Source of the DNA: Caecitellus pseudoparvulus
Lineage: Eukaryota > Protista > Bigyra: Bicosoecida
NCBI GenBank assembly: GCA_965644315.1
Contig: CBFFRQ010000117.1
Span: 1-18,688, forward strand
Length of the DNA: 18,688 bases
Direction of reading: 5' to 3'
Position 1 is the stretch's first letter, and each line of letters opens with the position of its first letter. The position numbers were made by a program, and so were the translations under genes. Positions 1 to 12,146 of the stretch are shown piece by piece. Under the pieces are notes generated by a model, which ran no database searches, was not told where the DNA came from, and worked only from the letters and a program-made list of their open reading frames with translations.

Positions 1-2668
1 CGGAAGTGTACGCCGCCTGCGCAGCGCCTGGATGGACACGTTTGTGCTTGCAGCCCAACCATCCTCCCAAAACGCAACTCACAACACACCAAGCAACTCT
101 GATCACAAGGCCGCTGTCACTGCACTGGAGGCAGCGCGCAGACCCCCTGCTCCGCCCAGTGCTCTGCCTCACAGCATGGCATCTGGCGCCGCCTCCGGCG
201 AGGGTGAGGCGAGTCAACCTACCCTGGGCATCGGCCAGGCCTGGTTGCGGGCTGTCAAGCGCGATGCCCTGCTGCAGTTTCTTCTGGGCGTGCACGCCTT
301 CGGCGTCCAGCACGAGCAGGCCGTTGTGAGCCTGCTAGGCCACCCTGGCCAGCACACGCCACCCGGCCAAGCAACAACAGAGAGCAGCCAGGCAGCCAGT
401 CCCGTGCGCCGCGGCATCAGTGCATTTGTTCTCCGGCTCTTCTCGCAACAAGAAGGGAGCAAGGCGCCCTATTCGCCAACCCGCGAAGACGTGCAGGCTG
501 TCATGCAGTTCCTGGCGGCCAATTGTGTTGGTGTGTGGAGGTCGCTGCGGCGCGCACGCTCGCCCAGTTTGCCGCACCACGCCGCCGCGCCCCGCGCTCC
601 GCTGCAGATGAAACCCTCAAAGTTCTCTTTCTAGAAAGTGGTGTGAACTTTGACAGCGTCGGGGGCGACGTACGCCTGCTGCTGGTGGACCTCTCCAACC
701 TCGTGCTTGACTTCCAGGCTCGCGCTGCAATGCCACAGGCCGAGCAGGCCGACGAGCCCTTCCCCCTGATAGACTTCCCCAGCACACAGCCCCAGGGGGA
801 GCAGGCAAGCGAGGACTCGATTCAAGCGCTGCCTCCTGCCATGCGGCGCCTGCTGGCGGCAGCGCTGGCCGCTGAGCGCCCCCTTGCACTTGGTGCGGAA
901 AGTGATGCCCTCTCGGCACTTGTGACCACCGCGCTGTCGGCGGTGCGGCAGCAGACCGCCGCCTTGCGCCGCCAGCAAGCCGAGGGGAGGGCGACACACA
1001 CGCCCATCGTGACCGTGTCACAGCTGCGTCTGCTGCGCTACATGGCAGCGCAGCACGACGACCGCGTGGGCGAGGCAGTGCAGCCCGGCAACAGCCTGCC
1101 ACCCACTCTTGACACATGGCCCTTCCTGCTGCCGTCCCTGGCGCAGGCGGCACACCTTCGCCCGGCCTTTCGACCCCGCCCCCTGGTCTTGCTTCTGTGG
1201 TCCCTGCAACAGGCCTGGTTCGACAGCACCATGCGGAAGGCGCTGGGGTCTGCACTGCCCTCTGCACCCGTGTGCGCAGCTCCCCACCTCATGCCGGGGG
1301 CCACGGCACCCAGCCTGAACGCCCTGCGACCCACCGACGCCCCAGGGGAGGGTGCGTGGGTGTGCTCTGGCGGCGAGGAGGACGCTCCCCTCCTTCTGGG
1401 TGAGGAGCGCCCTCCACCAGCCACTGCCCTGGCAGCTGCGGCAAGGGAGGTGCACGGGCACTTCCCTCAGCGCCCCATTCGCCCGCGCTGGGAAAGCGAG
1501 TCTCCAGGGGGGTTCCCAGAAAGTCTTCGCAGAGGCTTGGCGGGCCTGGGGCCTGAGGAGGTGGACGCTCTGCTGGCCTCGGCATACGCGTCTACCCTCA
1601 TGCTGCGGGCCACGTTCAACTTGTCCGACTTCATGCGGCAGGTGTGGTACCCACACGTCATCCTGGCACACGCCCAGCACCTGTTCCCGCCCTGGACCAC
1701 GCCCTCCTCGCTGGCCCGCGCAGCTGAGCTGCACGCGGCAGAGGGCACCGCCCCCACGCCCACAGCAAGCGCCGCTGCAGCTGCCCCCCCAAGCAGCCCA
1801 CAGTCACCACCAGGGTGGGCAGCGGCGACCCAGGTGGCCCAAGCGAACCTCGCAGCCGCTGGCTCCGCCGCCACACAGCACTTCTACAAGCCCTTCATGC
1901 TGTCCTGGGCGCATGACGGCCTGCCGGGTGCCAACACCTCTGCCAGCAGCTGGATGATGGACACGTTGGCGGAGGAGGGCGACTGGCTGCCGGCCGTGAA
2001 CCCGCTGTTTTTCTACTTCCCCCAGGCCCTGCCGACAGGCAAGGCCGCCGCTGGCATCCTGCAGGACACGGAGTATGTGAGCGACGGCGGCCCAGCGAGT
2101 GGCAAGGATGTGGAGGTGACAGCGATGCGCCTGTGGGAGCGCGGCGCCAGCCAGGAGCTGAAGGAGGCAGGTAGGCAGCTGGACCTGCTGGTGGACCAGG
2201 GCAGCGAGAACGCCAAGCAGTTCAAGGCTGCTGCTGGTGCCCTCAGGGCTGCTGCCAAGGCCCGCAGGGACGTGGAGAAGAAGCTGCGGAGGAACTTGGA
2301 GACTGAGGGGCCCAAAGTGGAGGAGGCATTCACACGTCTGAAGGCCGCGCAGCAGCAGCGCACGGAGCTGTGGGACACTCTGGAAAAGCAAAACGTGGCC
2401 TATGCGTTCTTGGACAAAGTGCGGGCACTGGTACGGCTGGGCGCTGCCTCCTTCACGTTGGCGCGTGTCACCTCCACTTGCACCCCTCCCTTCTGCACAG
2501 GCTTCGCGCGAGAACCGCTGCGTTGGATGTCGTTGCTTGGTTCAGGGAGAGGGTGGATTCTGCTGCTGCCTCGGACCCATTGCCAGGCGCAGGGCGTGCT
2601 ACTTGTGCCTCCTCATTGCCGTGCTCATCGTCAACGTCGTCCTCCTCATCAACGCTGCTCGCTCCTGA
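1..2668 (+). CDS. 5'-partial large protein with C-terminal coiled coil and tail-anchor TM (SNARE-like C-terminus); exons <1-530, 608-2418, 2501-2668
   Basis: The frame of ORF 32..634 is open from base 2. Intron 531-607 (GTGTGT..CTGCAG) joins it in phase (G+AT = Asp) to DETLKVLF. Intron 2419-2500 (GTGCGG..GCACAG, phase 0) joins a helical charged region (ELKEAGRQLDLL...LEKQNVAYAFLDK) to ASRENRCVGCRC...RRRACYLCLLIAVLIVNVVLLINAARS*, a hydrophobic C-terminal anchor. Confidence 0.7.
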
Positions 2669-7807: not shown

Positions 7808-10460
7808 ATGGAACCCGAGTCCGAAAGGCGTTCGATCCCACTCACAGTGCGCTGTCATGTATGCGGGGAAATAGGCCATCGGGCGGGATTCCGCGATTCG
7901 GTCTATGTTGACTGCCCCAACCGGGCTTGCTACTTGTGGTGCGTGCACAGCGAAACCCTGACGTGGTTTGCACGCCGATGGCAGGCCCACCCCGCTGGCC
8001 TTGTCCGCTCACAGCAAGCAAGACGGCCACACCACAATGACGTGTCCCTACCGAGCAAAGCCTGGGGATGGGAAGCTCGTTCGCAACATGGACGGCAGCA
8101 GCGTGTTGCGTCGGCTGCAGCAGCGTCAGGAGGGTATCACGACGCCAGCGTCCACCGTTGCTCGGCGCCTAATGCGGGCACGACGCCACCTGCCACGCCC
8201 TGTGACACACCTGTGGCAGCAGCCCCAGCACTGGCGCGTGACGTCTGCGCTTGTGAAGGTGCACTCCCGGCGCGTGACGGTGCTGGAGTTCCACCCACAC
8301 CGTCCCGGCCTCCTGCTGAGTGGTGACAAGTTCGGGGAGCTGTGTCTGTGGCGCCATGACGCGACGCAGCGGGAGGTTTGGAGTCCCCACCGGTACCTCG
8401 TATCGGCGCTCTGCTTCGGCGTGCGCGCAGAGGACAATGGCGTCTTCACAGGCAGCCAGGACGGTACGGTGAAGCGTGTGGACCTGACCACGCACGACAG
8501 CACGCCCCTTCTATCCCTGAACCCGGCTGGGTGGCAGGGGCGCCCTAAGGACTGGCGCATGGTGCAGAGTGTGGCGGGGGATGAGCGCTGCCTGTGGGTG
8601 GGGGACGACGTCGGGCTGGTGCACGTGGTGGACCCCCGGGCAGGGGGCGGGGGCCACCGCGTGCAGGCCTCCTTCCAGGCCCACGCCAAGGGGGACAAGG
8701 TGCAGTGCTTGCACGCCAACCCGGGTGTGCCGTGGCTCATGGCCAGCGCAGGCAACGACAAGACTGTGCGGGTGTGGGATGCGCGCATGCTGGGACGCGC
8801 AGCCAGTGCGTCTGCCGGGTGGGGCGTGCCCGGCACGGGTGCATGGTGGGCACCCGTGCCGACAGGGGGGGACCCCACCCCAGTGCTGACTTTGCAGCAC
8901 TCCAGGGCAGTGAGCTCAGCGTTCTGGTCGCCCTTATCAGGGAGGCACCTGCTCACGACGTGCCTGGACAACCGCATCCGGGTGTGGCATGACGTCATGT
9001 GCAGCGGGTTTCCTCAACGCTCAAAGGCACAGCCACCGCCCTCACCTGCTGCCAGTCGGGCTTCGGATGATGCATTTGCCTCCCCAAGCGTGCATGCGCC
9101 AGTGCGGGGTGGTGGCACTCCTCGTGCAGTAAAGAGCGGTGATTTGAACCTTGGCGAGGCGGCCCCACCTCCCTCCACCACGCTCATCCACAGCCACGAC
9201 TTTGGCAGGTACCTGTCACCGTTTCGGGCGGTGTGGGACCCGAAGGACACTCGGGAACGGCTGATCGCGTGTGGGCGGTACATTTCCGACAGCTTCGGCG
9301 GGGTGAAGCTGCACCCCGTGGATTTGCTGGATGCCAGCGGAACTGCGGGGGGATCTGGTGTAGTAGCTCAGCTTGTGGACCCCATCGTGACGACCATCAC
9401 ACCCGTGACAGCAATCTCTCCCCACGAGCAAGCTATCGCAGCGGGGTCCAGCATGTCCCTGTTCTTGTGGAAACCTGTGTCCGCTGGGAAGCAGCGTGCT
9501 GACGGAGAAGGATCGGGCGAAGGCGACGACACGCCAGCCGCCGCATCAGCCGATCGCGACCAGGCCACACGCAGCCCTGCGCCCTCCGACAACACACCTT
9601 GGTGGGAGCTCCCAGAGCACTGCCATGTGGAGTCCCCCGTGAGCAAGGGGAGCAGGAAAAGCGGCAAGAAAGGCGGCAAGAAGCGGCAACGCAATGCCGC
9701 CGCCGCCTTCACTGCCGCTGCCGAAGCAGCCCTTGAGGCCCAGCCCCCAGCACCAGAGGTACTGCTGCTGGACGGGGCTGAGGGTGACGTCCAGCCATAC
9801 AGCATGCAGGCAGCTCTGAAGAAGGCCCGGCGCGCGACCCAGGCAAAAGCGCGCAAGGCCATGAAGACCACGGCAGCGGGCGACACTGCATCCCAGCGAT
9901 CCGGGGCGTCGAGCGAGCCGCGCAAAACTGCACAAAAAGGGACAATACGAAGAAGGAAAGCGACTGACACCAACGCCAGCGTGGCAAGTTCGCAGGGCAT
10001 GGCTCCTGCGTCGCCTGCACCGGCTGCGTCCGCACAGCGGCGGCCCTCACGGCGCAGCAAGGGGTCTACGGCAAGTCCACCAGCTGTGCTCCCCACCTCA
10101 CCACCTTCCACCAGCAAGTCGAAAACAAGTCCGTACTTTGATGCACAAGCTGCCGCTGACCAGGAGCTCCCAGGTGGCGCTGCGGCGGGCTTGGCGAGGT
10201 TTGCTTTTCGGGGTGGTGGAGACCGAGGTCGAGCGGCACGGCAACTGTGCCGTCCAGACGCGCCGAGCAGCACTGCATCTACACTGAACACATCCGCAAC
10301 TTTAACCCAGCCCTCAGATTCCGCTGTGGCAGGCGGCCGCAGGGTCCTGACTGGTACTCAGGAAGTCAGCGACAGCGACAGCGAGGCGGGGGACTTCACG
10401 GGCCCTGCCGCGCCGCCCCCCGAGGCGCCTGAAGGCACCAGCCCCTACTTTAAGAAGTGA
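7808..10460 (+). CDS. DDB2: DNA damage-binding protein 2 (plant/algal type: zinc knuckles + WD40), 858 aa; exons 7808-7938, 8015-10460
   Basis: Intron 7939-8014 restores CHVCGEIGHRAGFRDSVYVDCPNRACYLCKQDGHTTMTCPYR, like the plant DDB2 N-terminal CCHC region. WD40 repeats follow (HSRRVTVLEFHP, SAGNDKTVRVWDAR, LLTTCLDNRIRVW), plus the DDB2-like segment HSHDFGRYLSPFRAVWDPKD...GRYIS...LHPVD. Confidence 0.9.
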
Positions 10461-10505
10461 CTGCCAGACAAAGCAAATGCATTGGTGTGAGCGGGAGCAC
10501 AGCTT

Positions 10506-10583
10506 GCGCTGCAGCGCTGCGTTGGTCAGAGGCGGGTGTCCCGTGAGGGCTGCCACCCGCCTCGTCGTGACGCTCACTTGCGC
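10506..10583 (-). promoter_or_regulatory. Putative non-canonical SECIS element (type II-like) in the 3' UTR of the SelK-like gene
   Basis: Minus-strand RNA: GCGCAAGUGAGCGU C ACGAC GAGGCGGGUG GCAG CCC UCAC GGG A CACCCGCCUC UGAC CA ACGCAGCGCUGCAGCGC. It has a perfect 10-bp helix II closed by opposed GA/GA (CGAC / UGAC), an apical ministem, and a lower helix (GCGU/ACGC, AGUG/CGCU, GCGC/GCGC). It lies ~100 nt 3' of the in-frame UGA. Confidence 0.75.
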
Positions 10584-10649
10584 CGGGGGGAGGAGGGGAG
10601 GTGGTGCCTCGCAGCACCACAGGCCCATGTCAAGGGAAGCGTTGGCTCC

Positions 10650-11018
10650 TTAACATGGGCCGCGCCCTCAAGCCCTGGGGGGCGCCTTGGGCAGGTCCCG
10701 GATGCCCATCACGCGAGGGCCACCCCCCCCGCGCCCACCTCTCCCGCCCCCCCCTGTGGCACGAGCTTGGCCGCCCGCGGCAGGGGGGGCTTGTGGCGCA
10801 GTCATGCACTTGTACACTGCATACCCGGCGCCGCCAAGCAAGGCCCCCTTCATGCCGAGCAGCAAGAAGCCCAGCAGCACGATCCCCCCTGCGATGAGGA
10901 GCTCCTTCTGGCTGCCAGCACAGGCAGAAGCTTGCGCTGGGGCAGCTCGATCAGCCTGTCCATCAGCTTGGGGGGCGGTGGCACCGTTGTCGATGCGCCC
11001 GTTTGTGATTTTCACCAT
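10650..11018 (-). CDS. SelK-like membrane selenoprotein, 122 aa, with putative Sec (UGA) at residue 117
   Basis: Starts MVKITNGRI (cf. human SELENOK MVYISNGQV). A hydrophobic segment LLIAGGIVLLGFLLLGMKGALLGGAGYAVY is followed by a G/R/P-rich tail, then GPRVMGIRDLPKAPPRA-TGA-GRGPC-TAA (cf. SELENOK ...RMGRINHLRGPSPPPMAGGUGR). A SECIS-like hairpin lies downstream. Confidence 0.8.
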
Positions 11019-11227
11019 GGCAGGCGCCTGTGGCAACGCAAGTGAAACGCCGCGACCTACGTTGCGCACCGAGGAGTCCATGTAGGGAGGCGCGCGCAGA
11101 TGACAAGCTCCGGAGAGCCGATGTAGTTTGAAAGCTATGCGGGGATGTCCTGCAGTGCATTGTGCACGATTGTGAGGGGGGAGGGGGGGGCTGTCGTGGC
11201 CTCCAAAACCTTGCGTGAGCCAGGCTT

Positions 11228-12146
11228 TCACTTGGCAGAAGCTGCAGTGCCCTGCGCGGCGACAGCAGCCTCCTTGGCCGCGATGGCATCAGCATCTCCC
11301 AGGTAGTAGTGCTTGATGGGCTTCAGGTCAGCGTCCAGCTCGTACACGAGAGGCACGCCAGTGGGGATGTTCAGCCCCGTGATCTCGTCATCCGACACGC
11401 CGTCCAGGTGCTTCACCAGCGCTCGCAGGGAGTTGCCGTGGGCTGCCACCAGCAGGTCCTTGCCCTCCTTGATGGCTGGTGTGAGGGTGCCTTCCCAGTA
11501 AGGCAGCACGCGCTCCAGGGTCAGCTTCAGGCTCTCCGCAGCCGGCAGGAGGGCAGGGTCCAGGCCCGCGTACTTGGGGTCGTTGGCGGGGTGCCGTTCA
11601 TCCTCCGTGTCCAGGGCAGGAGGTGGGATGTCGTACGACCGGCGCCAGATCTTTACCTGCGCGTCGCCGTGCTTGGCTGCCGTCTCAGCCTTGTTCAGGC
11701 CGGTGAGTGCGCCGTAATGGCGCTCGTTCAGACGCCAGGAGCGACAGACGGGGATCCAGCACAGGTCCATTTCCTCCAAGACATGCCTGTGCGGCGGGCA
11801 GCAGCACTAGGCCATGCTGTGAGCGGGTGGCCAGCAGGCGCGGCACCACTCACCACAGAGTCGTGATGGCCCGCTTCAGCACCGAGGTGTGGGCGGCGTC
11901 GAACTTAAAGCCAGCTTCTTTCAGCAATACACCCGCGGCCTTGGCCTCGCTGTGCCCCTTCTCACTCAAGGCGGCGTCTGCGGGTGCCGGTGAAGAGGTG
12001 CTGGCCAGCTGCGGGAATTGCGCCCCCTCCACACGCTTTCACACACCGTGCCACCCGCAGAACTTGTTGGCCTTGTTCCACTCGCTTTCGCCATGCCTGA
12101 TGAGTACCAGCCTGTGGGCAGCCGCAGAGGAGGATGCTTCGGCCAT
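11228..12146 (-). CDS. gpmA: 2,3-bisphosphoglycerate-dependent phosphoglycerate mutase, 260 aa; exons 12146-12047, 11977-11854, 11786-11228
   Basis: Contains [12 protein letters not shown] (catalytic RHG), [50 protein letters not shown] and [14 protein letters not shown]. Introns 12046-11978 and 11853-11787 are GT..CAG and preserve phase. Confidence 0.97.

Follow-up and report, generated by a model that had tools for sequence, protein, structure and literature searches.

A putative SECIS element with an ACGA core behind a membrane-protein gene of Caecitellus pseudoparvulus, and the recurrence of this core in selenoprotein genes of the same genome

The window analyzed here is the whole stretch of 18,688 nt of contig CBFFRQ010000117.1 (assembly GCA_965644315.1) from the bicosoecid Caecitellus pseudoparvulus. 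Its minus strand carries a gene for a short membrane protein whose reading frame contains a TGA close to its end: an ATG at 11018 is followed by 116 sense codons, the TGA, five further codons (GRGPC), and a TAA. The predicted protein contains a single hydrophobic segment, and its tail is rich in Gly, Pro, and Arg. Directly upstream, about 210 nt from the ATG, lies a dPGM-type phosphoglycerate mutase gene (11228 to 12145, minus strand) with three short introns of ~60 to 70 nt; in a protein-atlas look-up, this gene matched only clusters with bacterial labels. On the downstream side, a convergent plus-strand WD40 ORF ends at 10460, leaving a 190-nt gap to the end of the minus-strand ORF at 10650, and the hairpin that is the subject of this report lies within this gap. 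Inside the WD40 ORF, a GC-rich imperfect hairpin (9651 to 9731) has weak matches to miRNA families (E = 0.35 to 9), which we take for chance.

Three sequences of this locus are available: the window, a second contig of the same assembly (C13), and a Logan contig (SRR8404393_72725, L016) from seawater metagenome SRR8404393 (Mariana Trench). On contig C13, the whole gene, the hairpin, and the flanks (window 10400 to 11100 versus L008 = G000:C13:114672-117723) are duplicated at ~98% identity, with a single change inside the hairpin (U to C, in helix II). Several of the genome-wide pattern matches described below likewise occur as near-identical pairs on different contigs; judging from these contigs, either two haplotypes or a recent duplication appear to be represented in the assembly. 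The TGA is kept in all three copies, and the 18 nt that follow it are identical in all three, which is uninformative at ~98% identity.

The original prediction had assigned SECIS geometry to this hairpin without naming a strand. This geometry is present on the minus strand only (10583..10506), where RNAfold recovers helix I, helix II with all ten of its pairs, and the ministem (Table 1), although a longer fold allows a rival GUCA/UGAC pairing in place of helix I. The GA at 10566-10565 stands opposite the GA at 10527-10526, and a single base separates either of them from helix II, which is the register of tandem sheared G.A/A.G pairs; the sequence is compatible with such pairs, and their three-dimensional geometry is inferred only. 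Next to them, the C at 10525 of the 3′ core faces the C at 10567 of the 5′ core. The folding energy of the hairpin is mildly unusual in comparison with shuffled sequences (z = -2.15 and -2.28); in a genome of ~65% G+C, a z score of about -2.2 means that folding energy alone proves little, and it is not the basis of our case.

Table 1. Features of the minus-strand gene and its putative SECIS hairpin (window coordinates), ACGA elements elsewhere in the genome, and 5′ cores of SelT elements from public metagenomes
Feature	Position or locus	Strand	Basis or core
Whole putative SECIS hairpin, form 2 with apical ministem	10506..10583	-	RNAfold folds; leave-one-out model R3
Helix I, 5′ strand GCGU	10573-10570	-	pairs with ACGC 10522-10519 in MFE structure
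Helix I, 3′ strand ACGC	10519..10522	-	MFE structure
Unpaired C between helix I and core	10569	-	
5′ core ACGA, C at 10567 for canonical U (K-turn loop position 3)	10565..10568	-	sequence
C between 5′ core and helix II	10564	-	
Helix II, 5′ strand GAGGCGGGUG	10554..10563	-	10/10 pairs
Helix II, 3′ strand CACCCGCCUC	10529..10538	-	pairs with GAGGCGGGUG, 10/10
Apical region: unpaired G-C-A-G (10553-10550), ministem, loop, unpaired A (10539)	10539..10553	-	folds
Ministem CCC/GGG, loop UCAC	10549-10547 / 10542-10540	-	folds
3′ core UGAC	10525..10528	-	register checked by script
CDS, 122-codon single-pass membrane protein (M1...PPRA116, inferred Sec117, GRGPC122)	10650..11018	-	translation
In-frame TGA, proposed Sec codon, six codons before TAA	10668..10670	-	sequence
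Stop TAA	10652-10650	-	
SelK, ...RGGG-U-G*	L001, 2024		ACGA; Pfam SelK_SelG, 38.7 bits
SelT, FCTA-U-GYRNEF	L005, 1407	-	ACGA; Rdx, 32.4 bits
SelS, ...RGG-U-G*			ACGA; Pfam Selenoprotein_S, 30.4 bits
SelW, VEYCGR-U-GYKPKY	L030 = G000:C30:478900-481100, locus 2030-2075		ACGA; pattern search
Form-2 SECIS behind gene without family assignment	L028 = G000:C18:544332-547387, locus 1507-1552	+	ACGA; 9/10 helix II pairs, 38.3 bits with R2
SelT homologue, 99% identity	L022, L023		ACGA
SelT homologue, 65% identity	L020		ACGA; four compensatory helix II changes
SelT homologue, 54% identity	L121		ACGA
SelT homologue, 52% identity	L122		GUGA
SelT homologue, 48% identity	L021		ACGA
SelT homologue, 44% identity	L124		AUGA

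Published descriptions give the canonical SECIS core as UGAN/KGAW, with cytosines in the apical loop "in a few cases" (PMC3753652), and hold that all SECIS elements have a U at loop position 3, which is held in a protein pocket (E699 and R730 of SBP2; Clery et al. 2007, PMC1874613). Measured in this way, the hairpin satisfies the architectural criteria and fails three that concern sequence. It lies in the 3′ UTR with its core 99 nt past the in-frame UGA (at least about 50 to 110 nt being typical), and it has helix I, an internal loop, a helix II within the usual ~9 to 14 bp, and an apical loop with the ministem of form 2. The sequence criteria that it fails are the U before the GA of the 5′ core (UGAN), where C10567 stands; the W of the 3′ core (UGAC), in which the K is present and C10525 takes the place of the W; and the unpaired apical AA (rarely CC) 10 to 13 nt past the core, in place of which the hairpin has GCAG, with a single A at the 14th base. 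The 5′ core was thus read correctly at the outset as A-CGA-C, and the C is the same in contig C13 and in the Logan contig.

Nor is the hairpin recognized by the curated covariance models: Rfam SECIS_1 to SECIS_5 gave no match at E ≤ 10 in the window or in a 221-nt stretch, where only weak miRNA-like noise appeared, and SECIS_1 (RF00031) matched nothing in the whole genome. That pattern-based searches may miss such an element had been suggested, and the standard searches do miss it.

Whether the deviant core belongs to this hairpin alone can be judged from the other selenoprotein genes of the 30.6-Mb assembly, and recurrence of CGA in the 3′ UTRs of unambiguous selenoproteins had been set beforehand as the test. 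We observe such recurrence in SelK, SelT, and SelS, which were found by Pfam searches, and in SelW. All four genes have the Sec codon at the usual position of their family, and SelK, SelT, and SelS have an ACGA...GA form-2 hairpin 40 to 130 nt past the stop. The SelW gene reads MASSASTPASASVAVEYCGR-U-GYKPKYQKLAG and then enters an intron, so that a standard ORF caller would split it. A further ACGA element, that of L028, lies behind a multi-exon gene without family assignment, whose candidate exons include one that reads ...YLTGYRGL-U-GAAAV and a C-terminal hydrophobic segment. The 3′ cores of the sister elements are UGAU, UGAA, CGAC, CGAU, and CGAG, and the base after the 3′ GA, which faces the C, is often C or A and not the canonical U. 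On this evidence, ACGA appears to be the core of every SECIS found in the genome (with the reservation that only A[CU]GA cores were searched for by pattern), and the hidden selenoproteome suggested in the original prediction is supported for at least six genes.

Other selenoprotein candidates in the genome were rejected. Both GPx genes encode Cys at the relevant position (NTASE-C-GLT across an intron in L002, G000:C67, and VASK-C-GFT in L003/L004, G000:C66) and have no SECIS; a Sep15/SelM-like match (L018) has neither Sec nor SECIS; and L029, a match to model R2 at 21.6 bits, has no 3′ GA and lies behind an ORF for a SET domain.

The window protein itself cannot be placed in any of these families. 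Among 5.8 billion proteins, only near-identical copies were found and no homologues outside its own species (a homologue search with SelS of this genome likewise returned only near-identical sequences), and without outside homologues the conservation of the residues after the UGA cannot be assessed. It has no Pfam family match at E ≤ 10, and membership in the SelK family was rejected in view of a BLASTP E value of 1.9 against the SelK of the same genome and the absence of a Pfam SelK_SelG match. The placement of its TGA near the C-terminus nonetheless resembles ...GGG-U-G* of SelK and ...RGG-U-G* of SelS in this genome; the gene is thus SelK/SelS-like in architecture only, being short and single-pass, with a G/P/R-rich tail and an inferred Sec near the C-terminus.

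To compare C with U on equal terms, the genome was searched with the pattern A[CT]GA-Y-G-R-N9-M-A-R-N17-25-YYY-GA, which treats ACGA and ATGA alike and leaves GUGA-type elements outside its scope, and helix II of each match was scored by script. Seven of the 52 distinct ACGA matches have 9 or 10 of the 10 helix II pairs, whereas the rest peak at 4 to 6 with a maximum of 8, making the distribution bimodal; among 36 distinct ATGA matches, none exceeds 8/10 (Fisher one-sided p = 0.021). The best ATGA matches (C31:405346 and its copy C94:114199) were rejected as SECIS elements: they have 8/10 pairs, only 6 of them consecutive, and no upstream plus-strand ORF. On the minus strand of that region (L119 = G000:C31:403900-405500, with a near-copy on C94) lies a long ORF of lower G+C content and no obvious family, which looks like a mobile-element or viral gene.

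Helix II also covaries. In an alignment of nine elements, nine of the ten pairs change on both sides and 94.9% of cells are paired, a level reached by none of 500 shuffles, while slid controls reach 42 to 54%. These figures are somewhat inflated, as the alignment was fitted to the structure with Infernal and two of the nine elements (L117 and L118) were chosen for their pairing; MAFFT alignments (A1, A2, and A5) were structurally wrong, and Infernal-fitted alignments were used instead. As a check on the window element, covariance model R3 was built from the other ACGA elements without it or its C13 copy. With 29.7 bits and E = 3.3e-6, the segment 10522-10573 on the minus strand is its only significant match across the 18.7 kb of the window; the runner-up scores 8.9 bits. 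Earlier models were less useful: R1, built from two sequences, was too sequence-specific (8.9 bits for SelT), and genome searches with R1 and R2, in which only 150 of the first-look candidates were scored, missed both SelT and SelS.

These results bear on the objection that the hairpin is a chance product of GC-rich sequence between convergent genes, the TGA at 10670 is a plain stop, and the protein ends ...PPRA. The base composition of the genome allows for this, as do shuffled sequences that fold nearly as well (z = -2.15), an extension of only five codons past the TGA, and the orphan status of the protein. Chance would not, however, account for the R3 match when nothing else in the window rises above 9 bits, nor for the presence of a matching core, at matching spacing and in form-2 architecture, downstream of four genuine selenoprotein genes, nor for the bimodal pairing of helix II. 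We regard a chance origin as improbable.

The core was followed beyond this genome through SelT homologues in public metagenomes, taken together with their 3′ UTRs (identities in Table 1 are those of the protein to SelT of this genome). The nearest sequences come from seawater metagenomes, in keeping with an inferred Cafeteria-like bicosoecid. ACGA elements are observed in homologues down to 48% identity, and the suggestion of a lineage-specific form, as well as the demand for covariation and conservation in related elements, is met, within the reach of sequence analysis, by these SelT orthologues of related organisms together with the covariation of helix II. The AUGA and GUGA elements recovered in the same way serve as a positive control of the approach. 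Among the homologues are L021 (ACGA) and L122 (GUGA), whose proteins are 72% identical to each other and have an intron position in common: their SECIS elements align base for base save for the core position and a few paired changes, which implies that the C/U position is homologous and has switched between close relatives. As far as these metagenome sequences can tell, the pair marks a recent C/U switch.

Comparison with these elements also places the apical motif. An A occupies the 14th place past the core in ten of eleven elements (A10551 in the window). Places 12 to 15 read GCAA, ACAA, UAAG, or GAAA in most of the eleven; the window element has GCAG there, and L121 has GAGC. The CA apical deviation of the original prediction is therefore true of the window's GCAG but is partly a matter of register, as the sister elements mostly have GCAA or ACAA and keep the AA one base farther on. 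It is a real but milder deviation, a single apical A being genuine in the window and in one metagenome element (L121).

A C in the DNA need not be a C in the message. Were the mRNA edited from C to U, the functional element would be canonical AUGA, and an unaltered binding protein would suffice. Nothing direct supports this, although DNA sequence alone cannot exclude it. Editing would reconcile the encoded C with the loss of SBP2 binding after a U-to-C change (PMC1874613), and the sister taxon does encode U in its DNA at the homologous position. Against this, site-specific editing would be needed at every SECIS in several species, and the frequent C or A opposite the C suggests that the whole core has drifted. 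We know of no such nuclear mRNA editing in stramenopiles, and we rate this possibility marginally below that of chance.

Another use for a hairpin in this position would be 3′-end formation, stability, or termination of the two convergent transcripts, without any part in recoding. Both the 190-nt gap between the ORFs and the palindromic helix, which forms on the plus strand as well, are in keeping with such a role. The conserved ACGA...GA is, however, strand-specific (the plus-strand version of the hairpin scores only 5.2 bits with R3), and the sister elements are not all located between convergent genes, whereas all follow a UGA-containing gene. We rate this role slightly below editing. Finally, a sequencing or assembly error at 10567 that conceals a true T has nothing in its favor apart from the general expectation of AUGA and is effectively refuted, at the level of contigs and without reads, because three independent sequences of the locus carry C, as do six other loci of the genome and four metagenome contigs of other samples.

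Of the decoding machinery, a tRNA-Sec(TCA) is present in the genome (72.6 bits in Rfam, confirmed by ARAGORN). SBP2 was not found: a Pfam L7Ae search of the genome (loci L110 to L116) yielded five genes only, those for eL8, eL30, SNU13, NHP2, and eS12. No SBP2-like gene was thus seen despite the tRNA-Sec and at least six selenoprotein genes, and it is not settled whether SBP2 is too divergent for this search or absent.

The reading that we favor, and hold to be very probable, is that the hairpin is a functional SECIS of the minus-strand membrane-protein gene, served by a binding protein that tolerates C; no experimental or RNA-level evidence yet supports it. In the 3′ UTR of the mRNA, the hairpin would form a kink-turn-like core, in which the GA dinucleotides of ACGA and UGAC would make the tandem G.A/A.G pairs, with the 10-bp helix II and the apical loop with its ministem atop this core. 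If decoding follows the eukaryotic pathway as it is known, which we infer, the element would recruit a SECIS-binding protein along with eEFSec and Sec-tRNA(Sec), and the UGA at 10670-10668 would be read as selenocysteine, giving a protein that ends ...A-U-G-R-G-P-C. Both the insertion of Sec and a selenium dependence of readthrough are inferences.

Since C occurs in every other SECIS found in the genome, the variant is a property of the decoding system of the lineage and not of one gene. It follows by inference, in the absence of binding data, that the binding protein must accept C, and it probably accepts both C and U because U stands at the homologous position in the sister taxon. The identity of this protein and any change in its specificity are likewise inferred. 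We give about an even chance to the broader proposal that Sec decoding in this lineage (probably the bicosoecid stramenopiles related to Cafeteria) rests on a re-specified contact of protein and RNA, achieved either by remodeling the pocket of the SECIS-binding protein to accept or prefer C or by replacing this protein with another of the L7Ae family (e.g., one that is L30-like). If so, the lineage would hold a natural pair of SECIS and binding protein that is orthogonal to that of animals and that may serve as an orthogonal module for Sec insertion.

Selenoprotein annotation takes the U that precedes the sheared G.A pairs as invariant and relies on patterns and models that incorporate it; a lineage with C as its normal state shows that the U rule is not universal. 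With U built into the models and C in the elements, the selenoproteome of this organism would go unannotated: the ORFs of at least SelK, SelT, SelS, and SelW, plus two more genes, are called truncated or split. Search tools should allow YGA cores. The lineage, including its C-versus-U sister pair, also offers a natural experiment for mapping base specificity in SBP2 and L7Ae proteins. Full-text searches of the literature turned up no account of a SECIS element with a natural CGA core, and a literature search returned no paper linking Cafeteria with selenoproteins.

One of the closest known systems is the canonical form 2 SECIS (RF00031), with which the window element shares its place in the 3′ UTR past an in-frame UGA, helix I, the internal loop, the GA/GA core, a 10-bp helix II, unpaired A-containing apical bases ~12 nt past the core, and the apical ministem. 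It differs in having C for U before the 5′ GA, C and not A or U after the 3′ GA, and CAG for AAR. The CC-type apical loops of vertebrate SelM and SelO also depart from apical AA; unlike these, the window element has one C and one A (CA), and its core is deviant as well.

Two further systems concern the base at loop position 3 itself. SELEX shows that L30 favors K-turns from which a C or A protrudes (PMC1874613), and L30-bound K-turns resemble the window element in being kink-turns that combine tandem G.A pairs with a C protruding at this position; they are, however, rRNA and L30 pre-mRNA sites, whereas the window element is a proposed recoding signal for which there are no eL30 binding data. 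In the SECIS of human SelN, the U-to-C change at loop position 3 abolishes SBP2 binding and underlies SEPN1-related myopathy (Allamand et al. 2006, as cited in PMC1874613). The pathogenic change from AUGA to ACGA is the same change at the same position as that seen here; in contrast to the human mutant, ACGA is the wild-type state in every SECIS found in this genome and is conserved in related species.

A natural counterpart of such a core comes from other protists. GGGA-type SECIS elements, reportedly described by Novoselov and colleagues in 2007, are said to occur in single genes of Toxoplasma and Neospora beside canonical elements. Like the ACGA elements, they would represent a lineage-restricted, natural loss of the core U in a protist that AUGA patterns miss; unlike them, they have G in place of C and are reported for single genes, whereas ACGA appears to be the general form of the genome examined here.
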